Positions 7,840-29,010 of a DNA stretch of 64,000 bases are shown here, piece after piece. The first letter of the stretch is position 1; each line of letters begins with the position of its first letter. Source of the stretch: Paramoeba atlantica. Lineage: Eukaryota > Protista > Discosea. The notes under the pieces were generated by a model that made no database searches, was not told the DNA's origin, and saw only the letters and a program-made list of their open reading frames with translations. A program made the translations under genes and the position numbers. The stretch is taken from contig CDRNVI010000045.1 of the NCBI GenBank assembly GCA_977017575.1, positions 186,001 through 250,000 on the forward strand, in the 5' to 3' direction.

Positions 7840-8896
7840 CCAGTCATCCGCACCTTTTGGTTTTCTCAAAATATTTGATACGAGCGAACGGGCGGTATAC
7901 GCGTGAGCGGGTTTGGAGGCTGCGGGGTGTGGAGGGCTATGCCCCTTCACTTCGTACTACATGTATTTATATTCTACAGTACTTTATAGCGCGCAAGGCC
8001 TCTTTCTTCATTCTAGAGATATTTAGGTGCATTAGAACTTCAAACTGATTAATATGAATTATATTTTCATCTTTTTATATTGAATACTTATTCTTTTTAT
8101 ATAGCTTTGACGTTTCATATAATGTTGCAGTGAGCCCTCGCCGTGAATTTCTAATAGTTTACGAGATGAAATTTAGGCGAGGGTCATTTACTTTTATGGG
8201 CTGGCCCTTCGGGGCACTTAAGTATATGAACTTAAGATTTGACCCTTTGGGGCACTTTAGTCTATTATATTGTATCCTTATAAGTTCTTCTGGTGAAAGT
8301 GAAGCATTATTGCGCCAAAAAAATATATTTTTATTTTTTTCAAATATTGGTTTAAAACAAGTATGTTTTCTTTTAGAGTGTGTCAGATTATTAAAAAATA
8401 CAAACTTTTTTCTCGGTTTATCATTATGAACTGCGCACAACAACACAATTAATTAAGTTGTCTGCTAGAAGCCGAACCGTAACGCGCACTGATTGCTGGC
8501 GAGCGAGTCGCTCGCTGGGAAACGACTTGCGACGTGAGACAGTTAATCATCGACGATCTTTGGTGCACACCAACACTGTTGACCGCATGAATGAGATGCT
8601 CAAGAAGTCAGTACGGTCCCGTGGGAATGGGGCACTTGGGTGCTTTGATGAAGAAAGAAAAGATCGACCAAAGTTCAGCGGAGAAGTCGTCAATGGTCTG
8701 AAGATCGTAAATAGCGAGGGAAATCCTTTAAAACAGCTGAGCGAAGATCTCTAATTTGACATCTAGTCGATATACTACTAGTATGACACAGGTGTCACTA
8801 TGACTACTGTATACAGTGTGTAGGACTTATATACACTCTACACCAGTGTAGGACACATCTCGGGCAAAGTTTCGATTTAGAACAAAGTGTGGCGAA

Positions 8897-9893
8897 TTGT
8901 TTGAGCTCAAGGTGATGCCTATGGGACATCGTTGCGCGCCGGAGGTCATGCATACCATCACGGCAACGATTGCGGGGGATCCGGAATTCTGTCTAGAAAG
9001 AGAGGCCTTTGCGGGAAGGTTTAAGGCGGACGTGTACGTGGATGGATTGCGGTATGCTGGGACGAAGGAACAAGTAGTTCAATATATTGATTTTATTGAG
9101 GATAGAGCTCAGAGAGTAGGGGCAACATTTAAAGATTCGGGCGCGGAGCCGATGAAAAATTATGTAATCAATGGGGTATTCTATTGCCATGAAGGAAAGG
9201 TAAAAATGGGACCCAAGATAGTCAAAAAAATGGCTCGAGATACTTTCCGATATACGACATATGCCAAGTTGGAGTCCGCCGTGGGACGTCTTATACATGC
9301 TTCGGCGGTATTAGGGGAACCAATACCGGACTATTACTTCCCTTTTAAAGGTTGTAAGACGTAGGGTAAATGCTTTGAATAACAACCCAGATTTGGCAAA
9401 CTTACGAGTCCCTCTCCCACCTTATACGGCTATTACTCTTACGCGGTGGAAGAACCGGTTGATATCTAATGTTCCGATCAAACCTCCGCCGCATCCCGAT
9501 ACGGTTCCTCATTCGCATGTTCTCTTCACGGATGCATCTTCTACTGGATGGGGAGGTATACTATACTTGGACTATGGTCAGGTGGTGTGTGTAGGCGATC
9601 GCTGGGAAGATGATTTCCCGTACGAAGTCAATCGAGCAGAGACGAGGGCCGTTCGTCTTGCGTTCGAACGCTTAGTACATCATTTCAAAACGGATACCTG
9701 TGTTGATCTATACGTGGATAATACTTCATGTTTGGCTGCGATACGAAAGAAGGCTACACAATCTGACGGTATTAATATAGAACTTAAACAATTATTGAAC
9801 ATAATTCGGAAACAAGGGATTGCAGTGAAACCACATTACGTATCTACGAAAGAATCCTATAAGCCGTCAATAGAATTTGCCCAGGGGGGATAA
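8897..9893 (+). pseudogene. DIRS/TATE-like RT and RNase H, split by a stop or frameshift
   Basis: FELKVMPMG and DVYVDG (RT); LFTDASSTGWGG, NRAETRA, YVDNTS and YVSTKE (RNase H). Confidence 0.85.
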
Positions 9894-9944
9894 CAAAAAA
9901 AAATCCCCCCCAACCCCAAAGAAACAAAAAAAAATCATATACCC

Positions 9945-10036
9945 CCCCCAATGGACCTTCATGGTTCATGTATTGGGTAATATAAAGGCAATGCCGCGTT
10001 TCATACTTCTCCCCCCTTATTAATCGCAAAAAAAAA
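9945..10036 (+). repeat. CRE-type 3' tail stub ending in an A-tract
   Basis: CCCCC.ATGGACC...GGCAATGCCGCGTTTCATACTTCTCCCCCCTTATTAATCGC(A)n also ends CRE copies near 47655-47757 and 59678-59775, and partly at 53765-53823. Confidence 0.75.
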
Positions 10037-10050
10037 GATGAAGATACAGT

Positions 10051-10082
10051 AACGATAATGATACAGTTTCTGTACCTTGTTG
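10051..10082 (+). other. Spliced-leader exon-like copy
   Basis: AACGATAATGATACAGTTTCTGTACCTTGTTG; the core GATACAGTTTCTGTAC and terminal TTG match kinetoplastid SL exons. Confidence 0.85.
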
Positions 10083-10812
10083 AATTATTTTTTCTCCTTT
10101 TCTTTCCTACAACATCTTCCGAACCATGGGAGGGCACCCCCCTCAAATTTTCTCTCTATTGTCGGCATCCCCCCTCCCTCTCTCGTCCCATCATTCCCCT
10201 GTGTCGTATCCCCCGACCTCTTCCTCCCGCCTCTGCGCGCTCGTTGTTCTTCTGTCTTTCTCTCTTGCGTCCCCCACCCCCGTGCCAGCAGCCCAAATTA
10301 TACTATACTTGCTCACGGGGTGGGGGCAGACCGATTGGGCTGCGGCGTTGTTTCCCCTCGTCTCCGCGTCCGTCCCGCCATGTCTCTCTTTTCGCTTTTC
10401 CCCCTTGGCGCGACGGCGTCTTTGCGCTTCGTCTCCTCCTTGTCTCCCACCCTCGTACAGCAACCTAAAGTATCTGATACTGCTAACGGGGTGGGAGCGG
10501 AGGTCACCTCCACGTCTCCCACCCTCGTACAGCAACACAAAGTATCTTATATTGCTAACGGGGTGGGAGCGGAGGCTCTGGACCGCATGGGCCCCCGCGC
10601 GGACGAGTCGGTCAGTGGGGTAGGGCGTAAGTGGAGGAAGGGAAGGAAGTGTGATGAGGGGCAGGAAGTGGGGGAAGGAAGGAAGTAGGGTGAAAGCTTT
10701 TTGGGTGAAGGATTGTAAGTGTGGAGAGTAGGAAAGTTGGAAAAGTAGATAAAAACATTAGACTCAATACTACTCCCCCCAATTATTTGCAAAAAAAAAG
10801 ACAAGAAAAAAA
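10083..10812 (+). mobile_element. Short non-autonomous SINE-like unit between two SL copies
   Basis: No credible protein; internal ~60-bp duplication at 10443-10570; its 3' end CATTAG..CAATACTACTCCCCCAATTATT.GC(A)n is shared with the CRE tail at 52688-52731. Confidence 0.6.
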
Positions 10813-10820
10813 GAAACTTT

Positions 10821-10852
10821 AACGATAAAGATACAGTTTCTGTACCTTGTTG
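10821..10852 (+). other. Spliced-leader exon-like copy
   Basis: AACGATAAAGATACAGTTTCTGTACCTTGTTG directly 5' of the 10881 ORF. Confidence 0.9.
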
Positions 10853-13800
10853 ACTTATTTTCTTTTTCTTCGTTAACTCCATGGCAGACAGACCTCGCAA
10901 CGGTTTACTGTTCTGCTCACTCTGCGGCTCGAAGTTCGAGCCCCTTCTCCCCTCCCATCGGCTGTGTGCAAAGTGCTTCGACACCGCTCGATCTACGTCG
11001 CAATCCCAAAGGGACAAACATAAACATCAACCGCTTGGGCCCGCCAATGGCGGACACAAGCAGAATGCTCTATCTCAGGGTGCAACCCTCTCTCCGATCC
11101 CCGAGTATCCCCCGTGCAATTTTTGCACGAAGCCTTTCTCTCCCAGGCGACCCTTCCATCGCCTCTGCCCGGAATGTGTCGAGCTCAGGTCACAGCGCCA
11201 GGGCTCAGTAAACCCCCTTCCCTCATCCCGTCCAACCCCCAGGCGGGACCCCACACCAGGGCGCCGAGCTCGTTCGGCTTCCCGATCCCGCACCTCGGAC
11301 CGCGCCCCCGCGCAGAATCGTCCCTCGGCTAGGTCGTCGAGCATCCGTCCAGCTGAAGGACCGCGCACGAGATCCCGCTCGCGTGTCTCCTTCGCGCCGA
11401 ATGTCTCACCTAACTCGTCTGTCGCAAGCATGGCCAAGACTATGGCTTACCACAGCAATCTACCTCCTCCCAAAGGTACAGAAGGCCTTCAGGCCACCTC
11501 AATCCATAACCCCGACAAAGTTCCCTCCCACCAAGAGCAGCTTGCGATCATCGCCCAAAGAAACGCGGAGGTCCTGGCTGCGGTCTTCAAGCAGGAGCGC
11601 ACGGACGGTGTGCCACCTGCACTTCGACATGAAGTGGAGGCACATAGATTTTCGAGCGCTGCCCGGGCCTTGGAGGCCCAATACGTGAGGAAGCGCGATG
11701 CCATCTTTGACGAGTGGCTTTCCCTGATGTGTCACGACGCTCGTCAAGCACACAGAGAAAAACAACTCGTCGAGGACAAGGCACACCTGTGTCACACGTG
11801 TGGCCAAGTTTTCACAGACCAGAGGAAACTCATGCAGCATAGAGCCATACACGAGCAGGCTGCAATCAGATCAGCTGCCATTAAACTGTTCCAGGAGCAC
11901 CGCAAGGGGGTGTCAGAAATACTTAAGCAGCAGTGGACCTCTTGCGCAGCCGGCCACTCCGCCTGGTTCCAAGAGCTACAGCACATCGCGCTAACCTTCG
12001 GCGCCTCCCCCAGGCCTTCTGAAGCCAGGGGCTGTGACGTTGACGAGCCTCCTCCCCCCAGGGTAGATACCCCTTGGAATGAAAATCTCACCCACCCGGA
12101 GGTGAGCAGGTCCGCAGAAACTTGCCCGCCTCCCGCGCAGGACCCAAGTGACCTTACACGAGGACCACGCGGCGTTCGCAAGCAAAGCGCAACTCCCACC
12201 CATCCTGACGCCTCTTCCAACGAGAACGGAAGTACTCCCGACAATCTGCTAAACGTCACGCAAACCGAGCATGTGACTGGCAATTCGGCGAATACCACCG
12301 CATCGTCCCCAGCGGAACCCTGTAAGCACAAGTGTCTGAATAAACGTGAATGCTTAAACTTGTGCTGCAAGCGTCACTTAACTGCGCAAAGTATAACGGA
12401 TAGCGACACCGTAACATCACATACCGTTATGTCAAAGAAACGAAGGAATTTTGAAGTCTCCCCGCTTGCCATGGCCCGATCAATTATACTAGTATTCAGA
12501 ACTCTCTACAACATGCGGAATATTGGCATCATCATATCTAACGTCTTCAGATGGATATCTAGCCTCGCCGTTCACCTCCTAGTAGCACCCATCCGCGCAA
12601 TCCCGTCACCCAACGCCCTCAATCCTTTCCGTCGAAATGTTGGCACACAAAGTATCACGACAAAACCGTGTAGGCACATCTGTCTGAACAAAGTCACCTG
12701 CAAACACCCTTGTTGCAAACGTCATATACGACACTCCCAGAAGAAAGTCATAAATGTGGTGCCAACAAACAATGGACCCTTTGGTCACGTACTACTAGTC
12801 ATCATAAGGAACACTCAAACCCTATTGTCCCTATTAACTGGTTGGCTTTCTGAAGCAGCAAACCCATTACACATTGTCCAATGTATGAACATGGTATATG
12901 TGTGCACAGGTAGTACCATCAGGTTCATTACTTCTTCTTGCAGAAAAACGTATGACATTTTCCCATCGCCTCTGCTTTTACTGCCCCGGATACGAATAAT
13001 GCACGAGAAATTTTGTTCAAACGTCGCACGGTTGAAAAAGCAACCACTGTGCATGACCGCTCTTGACATCATGAAACTTGCACAACGAATAATTCTCTGG
13101 TATATCAGGCTTTTCTATATACAAGTAGACACTATGCCACAAAATGACGGAAAACCAGAACCCGCAACCACAAGCCCCACGAAACTATGCACATCATCCC
13201 AGCCATTCACGACTGCAGTCGAGAAAGAAAGCAATCCCTATTTACCAGCAAACCCAACAGTCACGCTTAACCACAATGAGATGTACGAGGTGAAAAAGCT
13301 GACGGAAAAGCAAGAATTAATCATGCCTTGTCCCAGGGAACAGGAAGGAGAAAACGATGAAGTCCCTGGCTGGGTATTTCAAAGCAGCGCGACACAGAAC
13401 CGGGACGAATCCGCACCACCTGACACAAACCATGAACCACGGCAAAAGCAATACCTTCACTTTGTCCAGAGCAGAGCCCGCCCCGTGAAAGTGCGAACAG
13501 TAGCAAACCTGATCTGGACATACTTTCCAGATATTCGAAGTGCCAGCGAATCTCCTCTCGTCCGGGCTAGAATAACCTCTCTCCAAGCAGCACAAGCGGC
13601 ACTCTCGAAAATGTTATCTGGTAAAAGCAACTCTCATGACTTGGTTGTCGAGCCTTCCACAACTGAAGAACTCATGGACCACCGCGGATGCGACTACATA
13701 CATATCGAAGAACAAAATAGTCAACACATCAGTCGGCATGCCAGCTGGACATCCCTTCTCCAAGATAATACACTTAAACTCAACGAGAAGTATGCAACAG

Positions 13801-16645
13801 CGGGAGCACTAGGCCGTGCAGTCATGAAGGCGCTTAACGGAATGGATATACCACATCTCAGACATCTACGCATTACAGTACATCGAAGACTGGAGGAAGC
13901 GGAAGAAGTCAGTTACGAACGTATCTCACGCAGAGAAGCATCACCGAGTCGCATTCAACAGAACCGTAGTGCACCGACACTGCGCACTGTACAGCCATGC
14001 CGCCACACGTGTCGAAACAAACTTGAGTGCGCACACCTATGTTGCAAAGTATTTGGGCCACCCTATGCACCAGGGAACGAAACCGGTTGTGAATCCCCAA
14101 CAACAGTACCCAATAACATACATTCCCAAGTTGAACCCTCCACGCCGACAGTGCAATCTGACGCCTCTCAAAGTCAAAAAGCAGTAGAACTCCTGCAAAA
14201 GCACAATGCAATACTTGGCGGGAAGGTTACCATACGACTCAGCGAAGAGCAATGGCGACAGGTTGAAGCGAGAGCAAGTGCACGTTGCAACGAACTTCTA
14301 AGCGATACAACGGACAGGAAGACAGCTATACGTAACGCGGAACTTCTTAGCGCCGCCCTAGCCGTATCTGCTTACGAAATAGCGACGGAAGCGAATCCGA
14401 CAAGGGGCTTCCTCATCAGAGCTAGCACCGGACACGCCCGACGAAGGTATCGACCACTCGCCACGGAGAGAGTCGCACAAGAACTGAAACACCATCTCAC
14501 AACCTTGAAAACTTCGCTACGCTATACGAGAAGTAGGACGGAACGAGACGAATTACGAGCACAAATCAAAGAATGTCGAAAGCTAGTCAGGATACGTGAG
14601 GAAGAAGCGACGAAACAAAGAGAAGAAATCGATCAGCGCTGGGCCTCCGAGCGATTTTCCAGAAATCCGTGGACAGCAGCTTCAGAAACGATCGACAAAC
14701 CTGACGCTAATGAAGTACAGAATACAACTTACCCGACCTGCGACCGGAACACCATAGAGACATACTTCGAGTCAAGCTTTAAACCTAGTGAAGAACTCTT
14801 CCAACTGCCTCCTCCAGATGTACTCGGACCAGGAGCCGCCCATCCCATGCATTGGGACCCAATCACGCGAGACGATGTCACAGCAGCCATCAATATGAAA
14901 CGGAACTCCAGCTCACCCGGTGCAGACACGATCACCAATCTGATTCTTAAGAAATGTCCATCCATGCATGATCAATTTGCTAAGGTATTCAATAATCTGA
15001 TGACTTTCTCGACCTGCCCTCCATCATGGAAAACTGCAATCACTAGGCTGATACATAAGAGCGGAGCACCGGAAAACCCCAAAAATTGGCGCCCCATTTC
15101 ACTGACGAGCGCCCTTGGTAAAGCGTTTCACACAATCATATCGCATCGCCTGACCCAACATCTTATTGGACACAATGTGATTGACCCGGAAATACAGAAA
15201 GGGTTTCTTCCCGAAATCAATGGGACATTGGAGCACACCCAAACTCTATGCACCCTCCTCCAGCACTACCAGCGACATAAACGACAGTACTGTCTTGCCC
15301 AATTGGACCTCACTAACGCCTTTGGTTCGATCCCGCATAACATTATACTAGCTTCCCTAGGTTGGGCAGGCATACCCTGCAACGTTGTCGACTACATCAA
15401 AGACAGCCTCACTGATGCACACATACGAGTTAAATGTTACGAAGGTCTAACGCGTCCCATACATGTAAAGAAGCATCCAGGAAGAGCAAAGGAAGCGTGC
15501 GAAAGGTCAAATCCGCCCAGCTGCACAGATAACCGATCATCTTAACGACCCACAGCGCGCACGACAAATACTCCGTGATGCCCACGAAGAACAAATGATT
15601 ACACGTCTACGACAACGTGCTCCTGTTGCTGCCCTCTGGTGGCAGTTTCCGTCAGACCCAGAAATGGCACAAGAATTTGCATCTGCCATCCAAGGGATCC
15701 GAAACGAGAAACTCTCGCGATTCATGTCCTCCGTCATGACTCTAACCCCCCTGCCCTCCCGAGTATCCCTTGCACAATGGGGTCGCAACTATCACTCTGA
15801 TACAAAATGTCCCATATGCCGAGACAAACCACAAACAACAAGACACGTCCTTTCATCATGCAACACATCCTTACAACAAGGGAGGTACACACTAAGACAC
15901 GACATGGTTCTCCGCGAGTTCGCACGACACGTACGCCAATCCCCTGCCACCGAAGCTTGCCACTTTGACCTCACGGGTGAACGGAACCCACCCCCGTGGT
16001 ACACCAGTAGCGACAGTTTACTGCGCCCGGATGGCTGGATCAAACTACGGAACGGGACCGAGTTCATCATTGAGCTAACTGTCCCGTGGGAGGAGAACTG
16101 CGAAAACGCACACCGGCGGAAGTCAGAGAAGTATAACTCACTTCTCCACGAGCGCAGAATCGAGAACCCGAACTGCTACGCCCTAGCGTTCGAGATCGGC
16201 GCACGGGGACTTCCTAGCGGATCCTGTCGCTATCTTGACGCCGTGTTCCAAGGGGAACGAAAACGAGCCAGATCATGCAGAGAAAGCATGAGTTTAATGG
16301 CTGGTCGGGCCAGCTATATTATCTGGGCTCGGAGGAACGAAGCTGAATGGACGGACGAGGAAAACCGCTCTGCTTGCTAAATAAAAAGGGTTATCCCGTT
16401 GTATGCGGGCCTTACCCTGAAAACTCTCTGCTATTATGCAATAGTATGAACAAACAAACCCTACCTACAGTCGCAGGAGGACTTTGCCTCCACCGAGAGT
16501 ATTTGGATATCGCTTTCAATCCCTCACCATGGGTCGTCCTACGCCCCCCACGTCTTGGTGTATGACGACACCGGGCACGGTGTGTTACAAACTGATGGCC
16601 ACATGTCAGAAGGGAACATCCCTTTCTACCTCTGTCGCGCCCTGG
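10853..16645 (+). mobile_element. HERO/NeSL-like RLE non-LTR retrotransposon, RT internally deleted
   Basis: ORF 10881-15545 has Zn fingers and RT motifs (SSPGADTI, NWRPISL, QKGF, LDLTNAFGSIPH) but breaks near 15468, before GVLQGD/ADD. ORF 15595-16380 has CPIC..HVLSSC, RHD, RPDG, IELTVPWE and KSEKY. Confidence 0.9.
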
Positions 16646-16658
16646 ACGATAAAGATAC
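16646..16658 (+). other. 5' half of a split SL exon
   Basis: ACGATAAAGATAC; the missing remainder AGTTTCTGTACCTTGTTG lies at 29011-29028. Confidence 0.85.
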
Positions 16659-16669
16659 ATTATCACAGG

Positions 16670-16742
16670 CTTCATAAACACGCTTGATACCGGTCCCAAG
16701 CCCGGCGTCGTCTTCTTAACAAGACGAAGTGTGAGGGTGAAG
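16670..16742 (+). ncRNA. Twister self-cleaving ribozyme (P1 type with P5)
   Basis: P1 CUUCA/UGAAG; L1 UAA and GAGGG; P2 ACAC/GUGU; P4 CCGG/CCGG with loop UCCCAAGC; pseudoknots CCC/GGG and GC/GC; P5 CGUCUU/AAGACG. Predicted cleavage between 16675 and 16676. Confidence 0.9.
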
Positions 16743-17091
16743 AGTTTTATTGTACGATAAGGTACGACTTTTTTTTTAATATATTTGTCCATCTCTTCGT
16801 TTGTTAAACATACAGATTTGTTGAACATACTGATTTGTTTGAACATACAGGTTTGTTGAATATACACACTATAATCCTTGGTTCCGACCCAAAGATAGGA
16901 TATAAATTTTATTTACATGTTGACATGCTATGTGGAACCGAGCCTGGCACTAAATTAGTGATTTTATTCCGGTTCGTTTTGGCCCTGACCGGGGAAAACA
17001 TACCGTTCGGCGCCAAAATGAACTACTTCGAGGAAATTTGTGACTCACGGTCGACGATTATTATTATTATTATAATAACAATTTATTATTT

Positions 17092-17518
17092 GCCTCGAGG
17101 TCTTTCGGGACTGACGGTTGGCACTTCACCTTGAGGTTCCTCGGAACTGACGGTTGGTGGTTATACTTTGCCTCGAGGTCCTTCGGGACTGACGGTTGGC
17201 ACTTCACCTCGAGGTTCTTCGGAACTGACGGTTGGTGGTTATACTTTGCCTCGAGGTCCTTCGGGACTGACGGTTGGCACTTCACCTCGAGGTTCTTCGG
17301 AACTGACGGTTGGTGGTTATACTTTGCCTCGAGGTCCTTCGGGACTGACGGTTGGCACTTCACCTCGGGGTTCTTCGGAACTGACGGTTGGTGGTTATAC
17401 TTTGCCTCGAGGTCCTTCGGGACTGACGGTTGGCACTTCGCCTCGAGGTTCTTCGGAATTGACGGTTGGTGGTTATACTTTGCCTCGAGGTCCTTCGGGA
17501 CTGACGGTTGGCACTTCA
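17092..17518 (+). repeat. Tandem array of 5.5 x 78-bp units (36+42-bp subunits), mostly with cUUCGg hairpins
   Basis: Alternating CCTCGAGGTCCTTCGGGACTGACGGTTGGCACTTCA and CCTCGAGGTTCTTCGGAACTGACGGTTGGTGGTTATACTTTG. Confidence 0.95.
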
Positions 17519-18290
17519 CTTCGAGTGATCATTGAGGATTGGCTTCTCGTAGTCGTAAATTTAATGATTATTGTAAGCAAATATTGCTGATCATCACACA
17601 GTACCACTGCTGTCTGTGTTGCTTTCCAGGGTACTGGAAGTAATGAAAAAAAATGGATAGAAAGAAAAAAAAATGGATTCGCCAGTGTGACGCACCTTAT
17701 ACGACTTGCGCAGTCGGGTCAGTTTTGCACTGCGTTCATTATTCCACGGATTTCGAATGCAATGCCTTTACGGCTACGCATCTGTGTGAAGTATCCCCGG
17801 ATGTTCAACTCCAGTGCACCACCCCATTGTCAACTCCAGCGCACCACTTTTTTCACCATAGTCGACCGTCATTCCTTTTTTCTGCGCCTCACCATAGTTG
17901 AACATCGTTCCTTTTTCCTTTCAACATAAAAACTTATCCAGAGTATTTAAAGAAAGTGTAATACAAGTGTAAGATCTGAGTAAGAAACTTAACGGCGCAT
18001 TTGTAGTGTAGATCCGAAGGATATTATAAAATAATTCTTCTTTATATAATTGATGGTGCATTGGAAATGAGAATACAGTTTTTAAGAAAAAGTGGTGCAC
18101 TGGAAATGACAAGAAAATTATTTTTTGGGAAAAAAAGTGGTGCGTTGGTGTTGACAATCCGCCATCTAATAAAAGATGCTCAACAGATTCCACGCCCCTT
18201 AGAGTTTTGTCTCACGTTTGAAAACCTAGAATGATGACAAGAAGGGGAGGAGGGAGCTGATCTGCGGTGCCAATGGGTATTCCTGTCACT

Positions 18291-18454
18291 GGGCTTGGTC
18301 CCGGTATCAAGGTGCTTATGAAGCCTGTGATAATGAGGGTGTTGCCAATCCCTGGTCAGTAATCGGCCCAGGGACATAGCAACTCCCCATTATCTCGGGC
18401 GTAGTAAACACGCCTTGGCTTGCCTGGCACTGAGATCAGCCATTGGAAAAAAAC
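18291..18454 (-). repeat. Internal complementary region (ICR) of the YR retrotransposon
   Basis: 18335-18454 is the reverse complement of 28891-29010 (2 mismatches in 120). 18291-18334 is the reverse complement of 16659-16703 (first 19 nt identical). The two parts abut with no gap. Confidence 0.9.
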
Positions 18455-18752
18455 AAAGACGAAAGAATAGAAAGCAGAAAAAAAAAATATACAGAAGGCG
18501 TATGTATAGATGAATACATTAGTTTCGCCGATTGCTTGAAGTAGTAAGGAAAAAGAGCGAGAGAGAAAACAGAGAGAAACAGGAATATGCTGACATAAAG
18601 CAGTCAGCAAGTATCCATATTCTGGCGAGCGTGAGGGTGGAAATACAGAAAGGGTGAATATAGAATGAGAGAGCAAAGATGACCAGGATAAGTCACAACC
18701 GTATCTAATCTATTAAAACATGCGTGGGAACTTGCTCTAAATTTTATTTCTT

Positions 18753-19583
18753 ATGCCGAAGAAACGACCCACCGTAGCTACCTCACTCCAAGCTTCACAA
18801 AGCCGCTCAGTTCCTATAGTCGGCCACACTCACCACTTTGACGCAAACGTCGATAGCGTAGTCGACCAGGCATGCTCGACGAAAACGAGCATAAAAATTT
18901 CTCTACGTTTTGAGCGCGCAGTCGATGTGAATCTCCTTGTCAAATTTATGGCGGAAATCAGCGAAGACGAATGCGCAAGTGCAATCATGGATTTCGTTGA
19001 AAAGGTATTAGGGGGAGAATCCCTCAGTGAAAAAGCAAGTTTTACAGCCAAACTTTTGGGTGTCCGCCGAACACAGGACGTCTCCGAATTCGAGAATTTG
19101 ATTGGAAACGAAGAACATCGAGGAATTTTGGTTTCCCTCATGCTGGACCCCCCGAAGGAGCCAAAGAAAATGAAAGCACGGGAAGGAGAAAAGGAGGACG
19201 GGCAACTTACCGTATGGACAGGCACGGAGAATCGTCCTCACCTTGGAGGGCAACTGTGGGAAGCAGTGCACAACCCGAAGTTTCAAAAATGGGCCGAAAG
19301 CTTTCTTCTAACCCGCTACGCTATTTTCTTCAAGGAGATGCTTACGCAAGCAGGAAAAGGTGTATCCCCCAAGGCGGCACAAGAAAACAAGGCGGTATCA
19401 ATAGCAGCTAACCATTTCCTTCTAGAACTCGCTGCTCATTTTCTTGTGTTCCGCGCCGATTTTGACGACGTAAAGAAAGAGAGAATCTCTTCTTCTTTGC
19501 CGCAAGAACGTCGGATTGCTCCCAGAGACCGACTCCGTAACTATACCGGAGACTCTTTTGAAGGCGAAATCCTTCCAAAATAG
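18753..19583 (+). CDS. Probable gag-like ORF of the YR retrotransposon
   Basis: 276-aa intact ORF upstream of the YR ORF; no motif recognised, so the call is positional only. Confidence 0.45.
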   Translation: MPKKRPTVATSLQASQSRSVPIVGHTHHFDANVDSVVDQACSTKTSIKISLRFERAVDVNLLVKFMAEISEDECASAIMDFVEKVLGGESLSEKASFTAKLLGVRRTQDVSEFENLIGNEEHRGILVSLMLDPPKEPKKMKAREGEKEDGQLTVWTGTENRPHLGGQLWEAVHNPKFQKWAESFLLTRYAIFFKEMLTQAGKGVSPKAAQENKAVSIAANHFLLELAAHFLVFRADFDDVKKERISSSLPQERRIAPRDRLRNYTGDSFEGEILPK

Positions 19584-20392
19584 TACTTCAGGCTATGGAC
19601 GGGGAGGCATGGTCCAAAACAACAGAAGAACATTTGGGCCGGATGTGCGTTATTTCAACCGCCCGCGACCAGTAAATTTGTATGCCCCTTGACCTTATCG
19701 TTCTAATCGAGAAGGGTTCGTCAAATGCCTAGAACGGCCAGAAAAGTTTTCTCGGGAAATGAACGATCGAAAGAATAAACATGAAAAGGGGCCGTGATTG
19801 CCGATCTTGGGGGCAATAGATGTATGTTTTAGTTTTTCTTAATCAGATTCATGTTTGGGCTGAACATAGAGCACGAATATTATTATTTGCTTGTGCAGAT
19901 CATTAGGATTGTGTGTATTTGTCATACAACGAGTGACACTCACACACAACAGACGCCTTTATACAGCATAGACATTGTGGAAAGAAAATGGGCTTTGCAC
20001 ATTACTTAGACGTTAAGTAATACATGTATAGTGAGGGAAAGTGTGATAATTATTCCCATCAGATTAACATACAGTGTATCTAGTACGTAGGTGCCTAATC
20101 ATTAAGCACAATTTGTTGGAATACCAAAAAGGGGCAAATGGGTGGCATCCAGATTAAAAGTAAGTCATAATATGGTGCAGTTTCTCCTTGAAAATCGGGG
20201 AAACCATAAGACAAAATGAACTGAATGAATAAGTGTGTCTACAACAAAACAGTCTGTTATTTCATCCGCTATTTTACACATGGAAAGTTAAATATATTAA
20301 ACTGGCCATTCCGTTGAAGATATGAGATTGCATACGGTATATGTAAATAAACCATGTAATCACACACATTTAGTATTTTTGCATACTTTTAG

Positions 20393-21269
20393 ATGCAGAA
20401 AGATTCTTGCGAAGGGTATCTGGCAGCTCTGGCATTAAAGTCGATTGCACCCGGAACGCGAAGGATGTACGAGGCCCGATTTGCTGCTTTACGAAAGTTT
20501 TGCAAGAACCGAGGATTCGAAAAAATAACGAAAGAAGCGTTCGGATGTTTTTTGTGGCATCACGCATCGGTTGGATGCGCCAAATCGACTTTTCAAGGTT
20601 ACTGCAGTGCCCTGCTCTTCTATCAGGAATGTCAAAGCTTTGACCTCGAAGCAGGTGAACGCCCCTGGGCAGGCGACCGCCTCATACTTCGGGCAGTGGA
20701 CGGGGCTGCCATTGAGGCAGAGCAGCATAGACAAGAAAAATGTCCCAGAGGCTATGTATCAGAAAATATGTTACACGAACTTGTACGGTGGGTCACACCC
20801 CGTGCTAACGGGCCGCAGCTCGCAAGAGCTTTTCGCGTGCAATACTACGCTGCTCTTCGACCCTGTGAAGAAGATACGTGGCGGGGATTTGCGTGTAGAA
20901 GGCTCTTGTTCTCATCTTCTCATCCGCCACGATAAAACAAAGAGTTACTCAACTGATAAGCAAAAGTGCAAACCTCTTACTCATGTTGCAACCGAAGAAG
21001 TGCGAAATGCCCTGCGTGACGTAACACATGGAGACCTTGCGTTTCCGGCGTACAAGAAAAGATCCACGAGTAAACTTGTAAAAAGAGCATCCACCGAATT
21101 GGGATGGCCATCTGGAGTGACTTTTGATGGAACTCACACTCTGAGACATGGTGGTACTGGGGCCATAGTAGAAAACGTAGCTGACATGATGTCCAGTGCA
21201 CTATCGGGCATGTCGAGACAGGTGAGACAGAAGCACTACTTAGCACCGCGTTCTCAAGTGCATGATTAG
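20393..21269 (+). pseudogene. Tyrosine recombinase with one frameshift near 20875
   Basis: YYAALRP (R), RHDKTK (K), GTHTLRHGG (HxxR) and RQKHY (Y) across ORFs 20393 and 20571. Confidence 0.88.
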
Positions 21270-21411
21270 AGAACGGAAAGAAACAAAAAGCCACTCGCGT
21301 GATTTTCTCCTATCATATTATCATACAGTTAATCTGCAGAGATTTGGTAAAGTGAATATCGGAAAATAATTCCGTTATCCGCGCACACAACGCGTTTAAT
21401 TCACTTTTAGT

Positions 21412-24400
21412 TCAAGCAACGTTTGAATTTGGGTCATAGATCCAGTTTACGTCACCGCGGTGCTGAAAAATTTGAAAACTTCCTCGCAGTGCGCTCTGGG
21501 TCATACTTTGTCGGCATGCATCGATGAGGCTATCGTTTCCAAGAAAAAGAGAGTTCAGAGCTCGAGCTGAGCTGTGGAGCTTCCCTCTTGCGCCTACTTC
21601 GAACACCAGAAGAAAGGTGGCTGGGTGCTCAAGCCTCCTGGAATGATAAATATTTGTATACTTGTTCATTCTCCTCCCAGGGGCAAGTGAGCTCTATGAT
21701 ATATTCTTCCCCGTTTGCCAGTTTCACCCAGCCGTCCGGTCGGAGCTCAGTGTCCAAGTTTGTGAGCCACGACGGAGTGGAGCGGAACTGAGGAAGATCA
21801 AAGTGCGCGAGTCTTGTTGCAGGAGAATTGGCCACACAGTATGCTAGGGTTTGGAGGACTAGATCATGCCGCAGGGTGTATCGGCCCTGTTCGAGTGATT
21901 TTGCACACCCGGAGAGGATATGGCGTGTGGTCTGCGTTTCGGTTCTGCATATCGGGCACTTGTCGCTGGTGTGGGTTGAAACGCCCCATTTGCGGAGTGA
22001 TGCCCTCGTAGGAAGGGGGGTCTGAGTAATAACTGATGCCGTAAATCTTGAGAGGCTCTCGCTTTTCAGATTACATAGTGCAGCGGCAAAATCCCTCGCT
22101 AGATCCGCCTCAGTGGCCATCCTGAACCATTGCCCAGCTACGGTCGTACGTCGTTGAACAGCTTGGGAAAGGTGACGCTCATATTCAGTTGCAAGTACTC
22201 TTCGGACATTACCGCCGTGGAGGCTTTGAATGTCAATTGAGGGTCGAATGTGCCCGGATTGTCTCTTCGCTTGTTCTCGACGAATACGTTCGCGCAATGA
22301 ATACTTGACAGCAGGATCCTTTGATTTCTCCATTTGCTGAGTAGTTTGTGCTGTGCATAAGAGCCACAGTTTCGACAAGCTCAGGAGGTTCCACCCGTGC
22401 TCGGAGTAGAGAAGTTCACTCGTGGCTGTTTTGGCGAGGTTGAGCCATTTACGGATCGCTTGTGTAGCGTACCTCTGAAGACGAAGCACGTGGTTGAACG
22501 AGAGGCAGGTATTCACAACAAGGGAATAACGAAGACGCGAGATGACACCCTGGTTGTATATCCAGAGTCGTGCGGGCAGGTCATGGGCACTATTCGTAAT
22601 ATTTTGTAGCCACATGCGCAGACGAGCTCGCAGTTTCTGGAAGAGAATCTTGCTTTGTTGTGCACCTGGAGCAAGCGTCATCCCTAAGAAGGTGCTTCCT
22701 TTGTCGCATATCTGGGGAATCGGAGCTCCATTGATCGTGAGCTGAGGATGCCGAGTCATATAACCCGAGTCTTGCGTCATTGACATGTGCTGAATTCGGC
22801 ACTTTTTAACGTTGAGGTTCATCCCAATGTCGGAAAGGCCTTTTACAAGGACATTGGTGGTATTTTGCATTTCCCTGGGGGTATTCGTAATGATGGTAAG
22901 GTCGTCGGCGAAGGCTTTGAGAAAGGTCTCTTTGTCATCCCATGTGATCCCATATTGTGGGCAGCTTGATCGAACGAAACGCAGAACCAACTCCATTGCA
23001 AGATTGAATAGTATGGGGGAGAGAGTATCGCCCTGCAATACACCTCGATCTATCGGGATGGGTTTTGTAAGACCTTCAGCGCACTTGATTTGAATGGATG
23101 CTTTCTCGTAGAGTTGTTCTATGTATTGAACGATAATTGGAGATACGCGCGCCCATTTTAGAGCCTGTAACAGCACAGTATGGGGTACGGACCCGAAAGC
23201 ATTTTTGATGTCGAACTGTGCTAGACAGTATTGTCGTTTGTGGCATCTTTGGTATTCGAGGAGTTCACATACAACTTGAGTGTGCTCTACAGTACCATTC
23301 ATGTGGGGGAGAAAACCTTTTTGTATCGACGTGTCTATGGCGTGAGAATCGAGGGCGTGATGGAGGATGCGATGACTTATGATTGAGTGAAAAAGTTTCC
23401 CGAGACAGCTGGTAAGGCTAATTGGGCGCCAGTTTTCCATGAGTTTGGTGTCGCCTCCTTTGTGGATCAGTCGGGTGACGGCCGTTTTCCATGTCGGCGG
23501 GCATACGCCGAATTTGAGTATGTCGTTGAATACCTGCGCGACGACCGAGTAGATGGAAGGGCAACGCTTTAACAAGATGTTGGTTATGGTATCTGACCCC
23601 GGGGCGGCCCCCGAACGTTTTGATGATATGGCTGCGGCAATGGTGGGTCCATCTATCTCGACCCATTCCATGTGTCCACGTGGTCTAGGTTCGGTAAACT
23701 CATCTGGTGGGATGCTGAATGTCCCGTCCGGTTTGGTCAAGGATGTCTCGAAGAAGCGTTTGACCTCCTGGATGGGCACTGTGGGATATAATGAGTCTTT
23801 CCCGTCGCGATCTGCATCGTGGTGGTCTAAGGACTCCCCTGCAGCTGTCCACGGGTTGCGTTGAAATCGAGTTTGAGCCCACCGTCGTTCGATTTCCATT
23901 TTTTGTAGGCGTGCTTCTTCCTCGTATAGTTTTAGCGCTTTGTGTGCTTCTTTTATCCTCCCTCTTTGGGCATTTCGCTCTGGGCCGTGCATAAAGGTCA
24001 GTGACCGTTTTAGTTGACGAACGTGTAGATTTAATGACTTGAGAGTACGGTCGATGGCAAGGGGGCGTGAGCTACGTTTGGACCTGCCTGTTCGGGTTCG
24101 AAGTAGAAACCCGCGTGTGGGGTTAATCTCTTTCGCAGTTTCGTAGACGGATACAGCCAAGATGGCAGAAATGACTTCAGCTTGGAACAGCGCGTCTTCT
24201 TTACTTCGCGCAGGGTGCATGAATGCATTGCAACGTCCTTCAATTCTTGAGATGGTGAGATCCCATTGGCTAGTGTCAAAGTGCACCAGGGCACGTCCAC
24301 CTTGAATGGTGCGGAATGTTTCAAGCATGCTCTCGAGCTCCGAGCGTGGACAGGGTGGTGTGGCATGCGATGCGTTTGTTCGTGGGGTTCGTTGGAGTAT

Positions 24401-26254
24401 AGTGTGGGCACCGTTGTGGTATGAGCGGTCTGAGATCGGATCTGGGCGTCGTTCAGTAGACATTGCGGCGTTTGCAGGATGCGGGGGAGAATCTGCGACG
24501 GGGGTTGTTGGAAAGCGGTCGGCGAGGGGCTCAGGTTGTGAGGATGGTTGAACTTCCTGGGGGGCAGGCAGTGCGGTCGGTTGGGTCGGTCTATCGAGTA
24601 TAAGGAGGTTTCGTACAGTCCAGGATATTGCAGAGCAGGCGATTTCTCCAGCTCTCACGAGCGTGCCTTTTTGGCAGCAGGCGTGTTGGCATTGCGATTT
24701 ATCTTTGCACTTATGCTTGCAGGGACGACGTGGTCTTGTGTCTCGTGATACGTCATTTTCGTTACTGGGGGACGGTTCGTTGGGGGCGGTGCCGGGAGGC
24801 TGGGTGTTGGGAAGTGGAATTTCTCCCATGGTCCCTTCCGTGGTCTCCGTTCGCGTGGTTGGCGTCTCTGCTGTGGGAATTTCGGTTACATCCGTGGAAG
24901 CCGATGTCCACGGAATTAGATTTCGCAATGACCATGAGTGGTTTCTATTCGCCGTTGGACTGATGCGGACTCCCTCCTTGCAACATTTGTGCTTACATAG
25001 AGTCTTATTGCCACACTGATGCTTGCATGGACGGTAGTTGTCCCGGTTGGCCGTCTCTGTTGCGTTAGGATCGCTGTTGCTCCCTTGTGGCGGTGGTTGT
25101 GTGTGGGGCATAAGTCGTGTTGGTCTTGCGAGACTCCTTTCCGAGCTGTTAGTTTCTATTACATGTGCGTGTATGCGATTTTCCGTGTTCGTGCATGTGA
25201 TAGTCGTCATATCGGGGTGGGCATCGATCGAGTGGGCAGGGGTAAAGTTCGTATGTGTAACCGGTTGATCCATTGGAGGCTGTGCGGAATGCAAGTCGTG
25301 GTGTACCATCAGTTCGTCTTTGGATACGAGCACACCAATTTTGCAACAACTGTGTAGACATTTTGTTTTGTCGCGACGGGTGTGCTTGCAAGGTCTTCGC
25401 GTCTCCGTATTCGTATGGTGACGGATGGAGTTCGTTGTTGTGACAAGTGGTGCCTCCCTTTCCGTACTATTCGGTCCCACGGCGGTAGCTTCTGCGGGCG
25501 GATTAACTACGGCGGTGACTTTACAGCACGCATGCAGGCATGAGTTTTTGTCGCGACATTTGTGGTTGCATGGTTGACGTGGCTTTGTAGGTTGTGATGA
25601 GGTTTCCGGTCCTGTTGGCTGTTCCCGAATCCTGTATGCAGCATCGTAGGTGATTTGATGTTGTAGCCAAGTCCCGCTTGTGGACTCAGTGCTTCGCGCT
25701 ATATGTTTTATTTCATACTGGGACAGTCCAGGGACATTGTCGCCGTTTAGTTTTTTCATCACTGCCTTGCTTAAGTTTTGGGGAGACGAATAATGCGAGT
25801 CGAGACACATCTCCGAGTCGTGAAAAGCGGACGTCCAGCTGGCGTGGCGGAAAGTGCGGTGAGGTAGTTTCTTCTCTTTATATTCCAGGTATTCGCATGC
25901 ACCATGGTCCATAACATTCTGTACTGTGCATTTACCGACGACTAGCCCGTCACTTCTTTTGTTCTCTGTTTTTAGAGTCTTGTTTAGGGAAGCTTCGGCA
26001 GTGTGTACACTCGAGAAGAACTTCTTATCGGTAAGAAAGACAGCCGCGGCGTGTGCATCCGGAAAATATGACCACTGAACGCTTGAAGCGAGTCGAAGTT
26101 TCACTGGTACCGCGCGACTCTGGATGAAGTGGAAATTCTGTTGCTTCGCGCTGACAGGTCCTCGAGGAAGGCCGTCGTGCGCGTCGGGAGCAGATGTGAT
26201 AACATTGGAGGACATGCTCCGAGAGATAAGTTTAGTACAAAATTGAAAATAATT
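21412..26254 (-). mobile_element. HERO/NeSL-like RLE non-LTR retrotransposon inserted antisense in the YR element
   Basis: 1543-aa ORF with NWRPISL, GVLQGDTLSP, AFADD, CPIC..HILSGC, RHD, RPDG and IELTCPWE; a small deletion/frameshift near 21655 removes part of the RLE. Confidence 0.92.
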
Positions 26255-26279
26255 CAACAAGGTACAGAAACTGTATCTT
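26255..26279 (-). other. Spliced-leader exon-like copy (5'-truncated) heading the minus-strand element
   Basis: The reverse complement reads AAGATACAGTTTCTGTACCTTGTTG followed by AATTATTTT. Confidence 0.88.
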
Positions 26280-26575
26280 CTTCTGCGTAATTAGTTCATA
26301 ATATAGTTAGTTCCATGTAAACTAGTTTCTTGGAGACTTGTTTCACTAAATTAAAGATACTAAAAGTTTGGTTTTCAAGTCGAAACGTTAAGTGAAAGAA
26401 GTTGGAAGCTATAAAAAAGAGAGTCGTTACAAATCGAGTGTTACAACTATGAGACCTTCCTCCAATAATGTCCTAAATCTCTACGTGAAATCATACGTGT
26501 CTTGTACAAGTTTGTCTTGTACAACGATTATTTCTTATGTGGCGCACAGCTATGCATTCCGCCATTTGATTACTA

Positions 26576-28333
26576 ATGAATAAACGTAGGTTTATTCGTC
26601 TTTTGACATTGGGATATAATATAGTATTAATGAACGAACCCGCGGACAACCTAGAATATGGAACGGCATATGGTGCAGTCCTCCAAAAGTCCTGTACACT
26701 AAAGCAACGGGCCCTTGATCCCATTTCGGTTGCAGGTCGTCTTCATATCGATACTCTATGCGCTATTGCATCTCGAAGCACGTACACGTGGGGAAAAAAG
26801 TGCCTTACCATACTCACTAATGAACACTCATTTCGTCTTTTCACGGAATTCGAAGGCTTTCGTGGGAAACTTGGGGTACATTCTGAAGCAAAATGGCGTG
26901 ATCACTTAGCTGAGCTTTGTTCGTATGAAGTACTGCGCAGAGTTCAGGATTTTCGTAATGATTTTCGCCTTTATTTACGATACTTTGAAGTGCCAAAAGA
27001 TGAAATTTCATCTCGGAGCATCGTAGATTGCACCCCTATAAACGATAGATGCGCTACTCCCCCTAGGCTAAACTTTCCAGCTCTCGCAGAAGTCACACAC
27101 ATCTTATCATGCTTTCCAGGTGGAAAATTCTTGATTGCGGACATTCGTCATTTCTTTCATCAAATACGAATCCCATCAGGCTTGGGTCGCATATTCTCAA
27201 TAAAATGCGAGGACAAGACTTTCGAGTTGCGAGTTCTCCCAATGGGGTTCTCTTGGGCTCCTTATCTTGCCCAATGTCTGGCATGGATAATTGTTTTAGC
27301 GGCTTGTACTACAGGTTATGAGATGTTACCTGTCCGAGACACATCTGAATCACCTCCGGCATTCGCGTGGGCGATAAATAAGAAGACAAAAGCAAAACAA
27401 GGTGCAGTATTTGTTTGGATTGACAATGTGTTGGTCATATCTAGCAACGAAGGTTTTTTAAGTCAGTTAAGATCGCAACTCATGAAAAGCATGAAGAGAC
27501 CGCCAACGGGTTGCAACGTCGAATGGAAATATATCGACGGCCCATGTGATCAAGCCCTATTTTTAGGAATAGAGTTCTCTTGGGAAATAGGCAATTTATT
27601 TTGGAAACACGCTGAATCTAACATTGCTCGTTGGAGAGTACTAGAAACGGTGTCACCTACGACCGTGCGAGACATAAAGAGGGTGATAGGTGTGATCATG
27701 TGGGATACAATGGTCACCCAATCCTCCTTTGCTTCAGTCTATGATGTTCGAATGATCGCGAAAGAGATATCGCACCTATCCGAAGAAAGCTTTTACAAAT
27801 TGAAGAGCGAAGACTTAAAGCTCTTGAGCATGCATGTAGTGCGTATATTGAGTAACAAGAGAAGTTGCGCATTACCGCCAATTCCAATTTCCCATCTCGT
27901 TCTTGCTTTTTCGGACGCATCTTCGACCCACACTGGTTTCTGCGTACTCCGTCAATCGGGAGAAATTTTGCTGCAAGAAAGTATTCCAATACTTGTATCG
28001 GGAGATATATACGATGCGGAGTTCTCTGCGGCAAAAGCCGCCTTAATCAAAGGGTGGGAACTTGCTCCCCATGTGATTCTAGGATGCGATAATATGGACG
28101 TTCTGCGGGCACTCCAAAAGCGCACATCAGTTCGACATTCAATTTGTCAGCAGCTCCTAGACATCGAAGAAAGGAGAAAGAGTGGGCTATCGTTTCGCAT
28201 CTTTTATCTCAAATCTAAGGAGAATCCAGCAGACGGCCTAACGCGGGAAGAGTTCGGATTCCGAGTCAAAGACGGTCTTTTGCCCGGAGGAGTCGAAATC
28301 GCTCTCTCACATATGGACCCAATCATAATCTGA
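26576..28333 (+). CDS. DIRS/VIPER-type reverse transcriptase-RNase H
   Basis: DIRHFFHQI, VLPMGFSWAP, WIDN and FLGIEF (RT); FSDAS, AEF, CDN and SKENPADGLTR (RNase H). Confidence 0.88.
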   Translation: MNKRRFIRLLTLGYNIVLMNEPADNLEYGTAYGAVLQKSCTLKQRALDPISVAGRLHIDTLCAIASRSTYTWGKKCLTILTNEHSFRLFTEFEGFRGKLGVHSEAKWRDHLAELCSYEVLRRVQDFRNDFRLYLRYFEVPKDEISSRSIVDCTPINDRCATPPRLNFPALAEVTHILSCFPGGKFLIADIRHFFHQIRIPSGLGRIFSIKCEDKTFELRVLPMGFSWAPYLAQCLAWIIVLAACTTGYEMLPVRDTSESPPAFAWAINKKTKAKQGAVFVWIDNVLVISSNEGFLSQLRSQLMKSMKRPPTGCNVEWKYIDGPCDQALFLGIEFSWEIGNLFWKHAESNIARWRVLETVSPTTVRDIKRVIGVIMWDTMVTQSSFASVYDVRMIAKEISHLSEESFYKLKSEDLKLLSMHVVRILSNKRSCALPPIPISHLVLAFSDASSTHTGFCVLRQSGEILLQESIPILVSGDIYDAEFSAAKAALIKGWELAPHVILGCDNMDVLRALQKRTSVRHSICQQLLDIEERRKSGLSFRIFYLKSKENPADGLTREEFGFRVKDGLLPGGVEIALSHMDPIII

Positions 28334-29010
28334 GATTGACAAGTAAACGAAGCTGCGAAGGCGAATGGACTACCCTAAAAAAAAATGAACCAGTATATTC
28401 ATCTCTATTGCTCCAGTTACGGAAAATCCGTAGCCAACTCGTCTAAGGTCCACGCACAGAGTGAGAGTAAAAACCCCGTCAGCATTCGAGTCGAATGATT
28501 AGACATAATAAGAAAATGCAGAATCTAAAATTTACAGGTAATTTGCTTTTACTGGGTTTTTGTTTATGACCATGTAAATATTTTGAAATACAAAATCTTT
28601 TAAGACCGCATAATAAGCTATGCGCGTGTTATTTTTCCTTTTTTATGTTTTCAGTACATGCAATTTATAATTTAGTTTTAGTATGAACTAATTTAATCCC
28701 ACTATCATTTCATGTCGAATTAGGCTCACAAGTTGCTGCACTTGTTCTAGAGCTCCCTGGTCCCATAACCCAGCCTTTTTGACGCACGAATGAAATCGTG
28801 TTGCCGGGGAGATCACTTGGTTGTGGGAACGGGCCCCTTAAGTGGGAAGCCCCTGGGCTGAGAAAGGAGGCCTCTAACGAAAAAAAAAGGGTTTTTTTCC
28901 AATGGCTGATCTCAGTGCCAGGCAAGACAAGGCGTGTTTACTACGCCCGAGATAATGGGGAGTTGCTATGTCCCTGGGCCGATTACTGATCAGGGATTGG
29001 CAACACCCTC

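Follow-up and report, generated by a model that had tools for sequence, protein, structure and literature searches.

A ribozyme that cuts inside a retrotransposon raises the question of how the element regains the nucleotides ahead of the cut. The question is posed by a 64,000-nt stretch of DNA (contig CDRNVI010000045.1, positions 186,001 to 250,000; referred to here as the window), in which a twister ribozyme starts 11 nt inside the left end of a retrotransposon. The first-pass annotation had placed this twister at the element's 5′ end, with the predicted cut 17 nt inside the element, and had inferred that an internal complementary region (ICR) keeps a copy of the severed end and rebuilds it in each cycle. 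The placement was reproduced both from the sequence of the window and from additional copies of the element.

Twisters are widespread, yet to our knowledge only a single biological role has been proposed for them, in the Perere-3 LINEs. If true, the reading developed here would supply a second role for the twister, in another retrotransposon order and another eukaryotic supergroup. Among tyrosine-recombinase (DIRS-order) retrotransposons, this twister would then be the first self-cleaving ribozyme on record, and the identity tract that stops at the cleavage site would be the first trace, at the level of sequence, of an end regenerated on an ICR template. Two ideas are joined in this reading: the setting of 5′ ends by ribozymes in promoter-less retroelements, and the decades-old model in which the ICR of DIRS-1 restores the element's ends. 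Since the ribozyme sets the length of the missing segment to the nucleotide, the model makes an exact, checkable prediction, with which comparative sequence data already agree. Under polycistronic transcription, such a ribozyme would also offer a retroelement a way to carve genomic RNA from host transcripts, although the cleavage itself is inferred.

Anatomy and boundaries of the element

The element appears to be a 12.35-kb gag-YR-RT/RH retrotransposon (16659–29010) with a LINE nested inside it, and its ORFs for gag, the tyrosine recombinase (YR) and RT/RNase H (RT/RH) lie in that order between the ICR and the right end (Table 1). The YR homologue is intact in a 7.25-kb copy, L001, where the expected succession of Phage_int_SAM_4 (E 5e-4) and Phage_integrase (E 8e-3) is found, with both matches below threshold. 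The RT, weak by RVT_1 in the window copy, is strong by homology: the RT/RH ORF has 1043 relatives by HMMER and, compared along its entire length, shares 28% identity with an ORF of Bodo saltans.

Table 1. Coordinates of the element, its ribozyme and ICR in the window, and of homologous twisters in their own contigs.
Feature	Position	Strand	Remarks
Left target flank, 5′ part of SL-exon-like sequence (…GATAAAGATAC)	16646–16658	+	At the 3′ end of the upstream LINE
First 17 nt of element	16659–16675	+	Upstream of predicted cut; contains P1 5′ strand (16670–16674) and N-1 uridine (16675)
Type-P1 twister ribozyme	16670–16742	+	P1, P2, P4, P5, T1 and T2; without P3
Predicted cleavage site	U16675/A16676	+	N-A dinucleotide
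P1	16670–16674 with 16738–16742	+	5 bp, read from sequence
P2	16678–16681 with 16729–16732	+	4 bp, read from sequence
T2 pseudoknot	16682–16683 with 16700–16701	+	GC after P2 with GC of L4
P4	16690–16692 with 16703–16705	+	3 bp, read from sequence
T1 pseudoknot	16695–16697 with 16735–16737	+	CCC of L4 with GGG of L1
P5	16709–16714 with 16721–16726	+	Read from sequence
Non-coding leader	16743–18290	+	Between twister and ICR
ICR, whole	18291–18454	+	Reverse complement of right end plus left end
ICR, part L′	18291–18334	+	Reverse complement of left end 16659–16703; 19 nt exact, then four fixed differences
ICR, part R′	18335–18454	+	Reverse complement of right end 28891–29010
ORF1	18753–19583	+	Gag-like by position; family match sought, none found
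Tyrosine recombinase ORF	20393–21269	+	Frameshifted in window copy, two overlapping frames; HTLRHGG…KHY motif
Nested non-LTR (LINE) insertion	21313–26280	-	Foreign to element; RVT_1 and zf-RVT domains
RT/RNase H ORF	26576–28333	+	Weak RVT_1 and weak RVT_3 matches
Right terminal region R	28891–29010	+	Complementary to R′ of ICR; last nt of element is C29010
Right target flank, remainder of SL-exon-like sequence (AGTTTCTGTACCTTGTTG)	29011–29028	+	Adjoins element
Twister homologue, L007	4491–4573		64 bits, own model R1
Twister homologue, L008	9464–9540		64 bits, own model R1
Twister homologue, L006	4181–4264		57 bits, own model R1
Twister homologue, L092	8553–8629		66 bits, own model R1

Protein searches returned few relatives, nearly all of them in ENA assembly ERZ24900291. 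The 12 contigs examined were all taken from it, and all copies compared thus belong to a single genome assembly. L001 is 98% identical to the window copy and lies between host genes, with flanks unrelated to those of the window. A third copy, L005, occupies another SL-like site, and L003 is the same locus as in the window, taken from a different haplotype or assembly. The nested LINE is missing from both L001 and L005. The SL core in this genome, CAGTTTCTGTAC, is of the kinetoplastid/diplonemid type, and the host is presumably a euglenozoan.

Similarity among the window, L001 and L005 copies begins with ATTATCACAGG… and stops with …CAACACCCTC. Because these three independent insertions of a 98%-identical family agree, the left boundary is fixed at 16659. 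The same 17 nt (16659–16675) are preceded by a different left flank in each of the three, and three further subfamilies also begin with ATTATC (ATTTTC in L006). In the window, the left flank was identified as SL-exon-like against intact SL-like copies at 10040–10091 and 10818–10868, and this target is split exactly by 16659…29010. From the boundaries of the insertions it follows that the element owns the 17 nt before the predicted cut. The figure is uncertain by one or two nt because a CA dinucleotide (C29010 and A29011 in the window) is common to the element end and the target. For instance, junction and target read ATA-CA-GTTTC in the window, CTAT-CA-GTTTA in L001 and ACTA-CA-ATATG in L007; the shared CA lies at 16655–16660 and 29009–29012, 5175–5180 and 12431–12434, and 4482–4486 and 10869–10872, respectively.

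The right flanks read AGTTT(C/A) in three of four cases, and the sites recovered suggest that the element may prefer SL-exon-like targets. These SL-like targets lie at the 5′ ends of LINE copies, outside recognizable SL RNA genes (…TTG without a following GT). An SL promoter had been offered in the first-pass annotation as a source of read-through RNA, a detail that is unsupported at this locus: upstream lies a LINE tail followed by 13 nt of an SL exon rather than an SL RNA gene with a promoter.

The ICR was described in the same annotation as an exact 19-nt copy of the left end, altered thereafter at ribozyme-critical positions and lacking the ribozyme's 3′ half, and sequence comparison bears out each part of the description. 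The 17-mer 16659–16675 has one further exact occurrence in the window, inverted, at 18318–18334, against a chance expectation of 0.03. The match remains exact for 19 nt, two past the predicted cut, and runs on to ~45 nt with differences at A16678, G16682 and U16694/C16695; the 3′ half of the ribozyme is without a copy in the ICR. Toward the other side, inverted repeat I1 makes 18329–18454 an inverted copy of 28891–29016 (97–98% complementary). As L′ is followed directly by R′, the order found in DIRS-1, the ICR reads as the circle junction between right and left ends in reverse orientation. The L′-then-R′ arrangement also occurs in L001, L005, L007 and L092, and recurs in the last two despite their differing R sequences. 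Repeat analysis revealed no inverted terminal repeats between the two element ends other than the ICR matches. Direct terminal repeats were not found either, the element's repeats being inverted and internal.

The leader and what follows it could conceivably have different origins. Under such a division, 16659–18334 (twister, tandem hairpin array and 45-nt inverted ends) would be a separate non-coding mobile or parasitic module, and the true ends of the recombinase element would be the 120-nt inverted repeats at 18335–18454 and 28891–29010. A related RT family, L002 (41% identical), fits this arrangement, as its 5.2-kb unit has 126-nt inverted repeats (1383–1508 and 6481–6606) homologous to R′/R and only these, with no leader in the available sequence. 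Assembler depth also fits, being several-fold higher over the twister and R′ than over the flanks and gag, which suggests that the genome has more element 5′ ends than coding copies, although depth is not equal to copy number. However, the L002 contig starts inside a LINE directly upstream, and its 5′ part therefore cannot be judged. Moreover, the composite moves as one, in that the outer ends L and R are common to three insertions and split the SL-like target exactly, and the ICR unites R and L as one continuous circle junction in four subfamilies. Given that the composite transposes as a unit and that the ICR is one continuous R-L junction, the view of the 45-nt L/L′ as terminal inverted repeats of a separate leader element was rejected as the main reading and is considered quite improbable.

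The leader of the single composite element contains a 78-nt tandem array (17005–17603) of ~6–7 units that are 96–97% alike. Assembler depth over the array was ~90,000, versus ~100 for its flanks, in one DNA run (X4), and the 78-nt unit must therefore be amplified elsewhere, either satellite-like or on many non-autonomous copies. A further leader segment of ~370 nt (17796–18163), with 33-nt inverted ends (17826–17858 and 18126–18158), occurs only in the window copy: neither L001, L005 and the allelic L003 nor several read contigs contain it, and it has the look of a polymorphic insertion of a small MITE-like element.

Structure and conservation of the twister

Twister ribozymes require stems P1, P2 and P4, whereas P0, P3 and P5 are optional; the crystallized rice twister, for example, has neither P3 nor P5 (PMC5408937). 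Of the two nucleotides that flank the scissile bond, the 5′ uridine is the less conserved, and cleavage in vitro can do without P1 (PMC5408937). All of the elements that the first-pass annotation had recognized in the window twister, both pseudoknots included, were located (Table 1). Its three essential stems are all present and are also obtained by unconstrained MFE folding in four subfamilies, and the unconstrained MFE fold of the window twister yields P1, P2, P4 and P5 (z = −2.5). The Rfam alignment contains the strongly conserved nucleotides of L1 and L4 as well as the N-A cleavage dinucleotide.

A search with Rfam twister models had been named as a check in the first-pass annotation, and its outcome was mixed. 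In a permissive scan of 301 nt (16550–16850), the twister-P1 model RF03160, a member of Rfam clan CL00120, matched 16671–16741 (+) with 37.4 bits (E 7e-7). This remains under the gathering score of 67.2 bits, which is a curation cut-off rather than a structural criterion, and a scan of the whole window at gathering thresholds returned zero matches. The low score arises because the model's optional P3 hairpin is missing here and the sequence has an additional 18-nt hairpin, P5; the conserved blocks (UAA, GC, CCGGUCCCAAGCCCGG, AAG and GAGGG) are all aligned. To the extent that sequence alone can decide, a genuine type-P1 twister is thus confirmed by structure. Self-cleavage and the resulting RNA 5′ end are inferred without RNA evidence: no sequence from the species' single RNA-labelled run could be placed in the region of the element, and the other four runs are assembler contigs whose kind is unstated.

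Homologous twisters were sought with a covariance model, R1, built from three near-identical copies with the twister secondary structure. A tailored model was needed since Rfam, in a search of 61 kb, found L007 alone (27.9 bits) and missed L092 and L008. The four homologues in Table 1 each precede, with matching strand, a diverged RT gene or a fragment of one (44–56% identical to the window family), and they begin 7–12 nt past ATTATC (ATTTTC in L006). Conservation of the twister and ICR across copies had been left as a check by the first-pass annotation, and it holds for the twister in L006, L007, L008 and L092 and for the ICR in L001, L005, L007 and L092.

Apart from decayed copies, the core, P2, P4 and T1 are invariant across these subfamilies. 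T1 is disrupted in one copy only, the decayed L006, and variation in T2 is limited to G-U. P5 differs fully in sequence and length among subfamilies, yet it is always paired. When pairs were counted over five sequences with both pseudoknots included, 96% of cells were paired, versus 35–51% with the partners slid by 1–3 columns, and none of 500 shuffles attained the observed pairing values. Double-sided changes were seen in six pairs, comprising five of the six pairs of P5 and one pair of P1. The alignment used for counting was fitted to the model, which is a bias toward structure, but separate MFE folding of each sequence gives the same stems. P1 pairing is weak in the older copies L006 and L007.

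These comparisons bear on whether the twister might be an inactive relic or chance resemblance with no role in the life cycle. Its sub-threshold Rfam score would permit such a view, as would core changes in L005 (N-1 U to A), L006 (CCC to CCG) and L008 (GC to GU, plus U to C). Yet damaged versions are confined to visibly decayed copies; elsewhere the core does not vary, and P5 has changed in compensatory fashion between subfamilies with RTs as diverged as stated above. With its fixed position at the 5′ end and its retention in the stripped-down derivative L092, the twister is scarcely credible as a relic or chance resemblance.

Outside these subfamilies, no twister was found in the available part of the L002 contig, in which a LINE ORF ends ~100 nt upstream, or in the sequence examined of L004 (a family with 49% gag identity, cut or interrupted upstream), L009 and L010. 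A resemblance to the twister 5′ strand at L002 1375–1392 was set aside as too short to interpret. Neither the R1 model nor a motif search detected a twister in 80 metagenome loci with RTs 22–38% identical, where most contigs are <5 kb and may miss the 5′ end.

The left end and its stored copy

If the ICR is the template from which the end is restored, its relation to the left end ought to change at the cut. The left end (L) was therefore compared with the sense reading of the same element's ICR copy (L*). Up to the cut, L reads ATTATCACAGGCTTCAT in the window and ATTATCACTCCTTCGT in L092, with L* identical in both; it reads ATTTTCACAGCCATTGT in L006, where L* has one difference, and ATTATCAAAGCTCCAG in L007, where L* has two. 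An additional pair, ATTATCACTC…, was found in read contigs (loose ends at 16670 and 18323), one member at a left end and the other in an ICR, although their origin from a single element was not shown.

Over the 16–17 nt upstream of the cut, an element's own L and L* thus differ at 0–2 positions, versus 4–7 between its L and the L of other subfamilies. Over the 28 nt downstream the relation is reversed: own L and L* differ at 4–5 positions in the three full-length comparisons, versus 1–3 between the L sequences of different subfamilies. The L* of L006 is shorter, and 9 of its 28 downstream positions differ from L. In this downstream part, L* has G for A at position 20, lacks the T2 guanine at 24 and has GA for UC at 35–36, and the identical, fixed differences occur in L004 (ICR only), L006, L007 and L092. 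The pattern of similarity changes sides within three nt of the predicted scissile bond. Hence the regeneration inference of the first-pass annotation has gained comparative support, as in four subfamilies the pre-cleavage segment follows its own ICR copy and the post-cleavage segment follows the ribozyme consensus. Such a switch fits what would be expected if the pre-cleavage nucleotides were copied from the ICR in each cycle and the rest of the ribozyme were inherited through RNA.

The boundary is not perfectly sharp. Two downstream changes are common to L and L* (T to A in L007 and A to T in L092), so homogenization or compensatory selection is not strictly confined to the first 17 nt, and compensatory selection for annealing, or occasional longer conversion, would therefore appear to act on the downstream tract as well. 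Two reasons can be suggested for the persistence of the four ICR differences: the tract might never be copied and hence stay as it is, or the mismatches might make the ICR a weaker antisense competitor of the ribozyme.

The observed anatomy, conservation and covariation of the ribozyme, the architecture of the ICR and the switch in similarity between L and the ICR at the cleavage site are the basis for an account in which the twister frees genomic RNA from a co-transcript and the ICR templates the lost 17 nt. Cleavage, co-transcription and templating are inferred, and the account as a whole is considered probable, though by no means secure. Its steps are modelled on the Cappello model of DIRS-1, in the form in which PMC7192593 summarizes it. 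The element, a tyrosine-recombinase (DIRS-order, VIPER/TATE-like) retrotransposon without a promoter of its own at the 5′ edge, would be transcribed as part of longer transcripts of the host or of neighboring elements. The twister would fold co-transcriptionally and cut the read-through RNA at U16675/A16676, yielding genomic RNA that starts at A16676 with a 5′-OH; the upstream fragment would keep the first 17 nt of the element, including the 5′ strand of P1. Minus-strand cDNA would extend to A16676, and its 3′ end (the complement of 16676–16703) could anneal to L* in the same cDNA, where 22–23 of 27 positions match. Extension of the annealed end over the 17 stored nt, and then into the R copy, would recreate a terminal redundancy and the R-L junction, in which the complete left terminus adjoins the right one as the circle junction required by the recombinase, and would also re-arm the ribozyme with its P1 substrate strand. 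Finally, a circle would form and be integrated at a CA by the recombinase.

The two strands of P1 must co-evolve in this scheme, given that the 5′ strand would come from the ICR and the 3′ strand through RNA, and P1 contains one compensatory pair. An RNA duplex of L with L′ is predicted to be far stronger than the ribozyme fold (−69 kcal/mol if formed prior to cleavage and −39 if formed afterwards, versus −25 for the twister), but cleavage can come first because L′ is transcribed 1.6 kb later. Taken to its conclusion, the scheme has the ribozyme discard its own substrate strand along with the 5′ terminus of the element at each transcription, and a catalytically disarmed antisense copy that lets reverse transcription rebuild both; confidence in this formulation is evenly divided.

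The same stability allows the ICR to be viewed differently, as a mere splint or pairing partner of the termini that templates no lost nucleotides. The twister would still process RNA, but the template RNA would keep its left end by originating from tandem copies or circular DNA, where cleavage gives a permuted, complete RNA of unit length, and the likeness of L and L′ would be held by selection for base pairing. In favor of this view, the predicted duplex is very stable both before and after the cut, L and its ICR copy have changes in common beyond the cut, as pairing selection would produce, and relatives of the TATE type have been reported as tandem clusters (PMC6681497). Every copy recovered here, however, is a single insertion with unique flanks, and none is tandem. 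Pairing selection also leaves unexplained why the same four mismatches persist in every subfamily just past the cut next to identity before it. A splint without templating is accordingly thought unlikely, and templated restoration of the end by the ICR is retained as the preferred reading.

Relation to other retroelements

Ribozymes at the 5′ ends of retrotransposons are already known from R2 and L1Tc (HDV-like) and from Perere-3 (twister). L1Tc carries its HDV-like ribozyme in the polycistronic transcription setting of trypanosomatids. As in R2 and L1Tc, self-cleavage, inferred in the present case, would free the RNA of a promoter-less retrotransposon from a co-transcript. The differences are that those two are non-LTR elements with another class of ribozyme, and that HDV-like ribozymes need no internal spare copy, since a cut at their own 5′ edge loses nothing. 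The position of the R2 ribozyme at the 5′ end is given here as summarized in PMC8501958.

Twister variants reside at the 5′ end of the Perere-3 LINE (PMC8501958). Shared with the present element are this location, a P1 5′ strand that lies upstream of the cut and, by inference in the present case, co-transcription with upstream sequence and a cut that defines the RNA 5′ end. Perere-3 is, however, an APE-type LINE that uses target-primed reverse transcription, and it starts at the cut, its P1 5′ strand being drawn from the target-site duplication. In contrast, the recombinase retrotransposon owns the 17 nt before the cut and holds an internal spare copy of them.

For DIRS-1 of Dictyostelium, the ICR has been shown experimentally to be needed (PMC7192593). 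It consists of L′ then R′, the complements of the outermost left and right sequences, which together stand for the circle junction, and it is proposed to complete the element, whose transcript is without the 5′ terminal sequence (PMC7192593). The present element resembles DIRS-1 in the layout of the ICR and in a short sequence common to junction and target (here CA). Unlike DIRS-1, it is without inverted terminal repeats, has its ICR ahead of the ORFs, where DIRS-1 has it close to the right end, and has the ORF order gag-YR-RT/RH with no methyltransferase seen. Its RNA 5′ end would be set by a ribozyme, whereas that of DIRS-1 is set by an internal start site, and the segment to be restored is 17 nt versus about 300 nt.

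VIPER and TATE are YR retrotransposons of kinetoplastids whose direct repeats are split between the 5′ end (A1) and the 3′ end (B1-A2-B2) (PMC6681497). They share with the present element a euglenozoan host (presumed in the present case) with a kinetoplastid-type SL core and three ORFs in the order gag-YR-RT/RH, but the present element has an inverted ICR in place of split direct repeats. Judged by its sequence, the element appears to be a hybrid, with a DIRS-1-type ICR upstream of the ORFs, no inverted terminal repeats and a VIPER/TATE-like ORF order. Full-text searching of the literature retrieved no twister in DIRS, in tyrosine-recombinase retrotransposons or in a kinetoplastid, diplonemid or euglenid context, and no self-cleaving ribozymes for Ngaro, VIPER or TATE.

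Among the copies, L092 is a 2.4-kb internally deleted element (8547–10942) that keeps the twister, a short leader, the ICR (L′ 9132–9174, R′ 9175–9289), an RT fragment and R (10828–10942). Its ribozyme core is intact and its L and L* match perfectly; what it retains is what would be expected of a trans-mobilized, non-autonomous derivative. L092 and L001 are each embedded in a run of + strand host genes and point in the same direction as those genes, a placement consistent with the inferred co-transcription.

Several minor observations were made in the course of the analysis. A T-rich tract followed by …ACAG lies at 16765–16815, just 3′ of the ribozyme; as pure speculation, it might serve as a trans-splice acceptor, giving a capped mRNA alongside the separate genomic RNA, which ribozyme processing would leave uncapped. 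At the left junction of L005 (8055–8079), the SL-like target …AAAGATA is followed by an inverted copy, TGTATCTTT, and then by ATTATC, so that palindromic filler marks an aberrant integration junction. Old copies contain nested Tc1/mariner-type DDE transposons (L004 11214–13548, L006 7910–8920 and L007 5649–6389). L008 has a pair of neighboring 5S rRNA genes at 3930–4186 (98.7 and 53.1 bits), of which the second is degenerate. Lastly, the L001 copy is adjoined by a glutathione synthetase gene whose product has at most ~31% identity to any protein, including those of Euglena and Trypanosoma.
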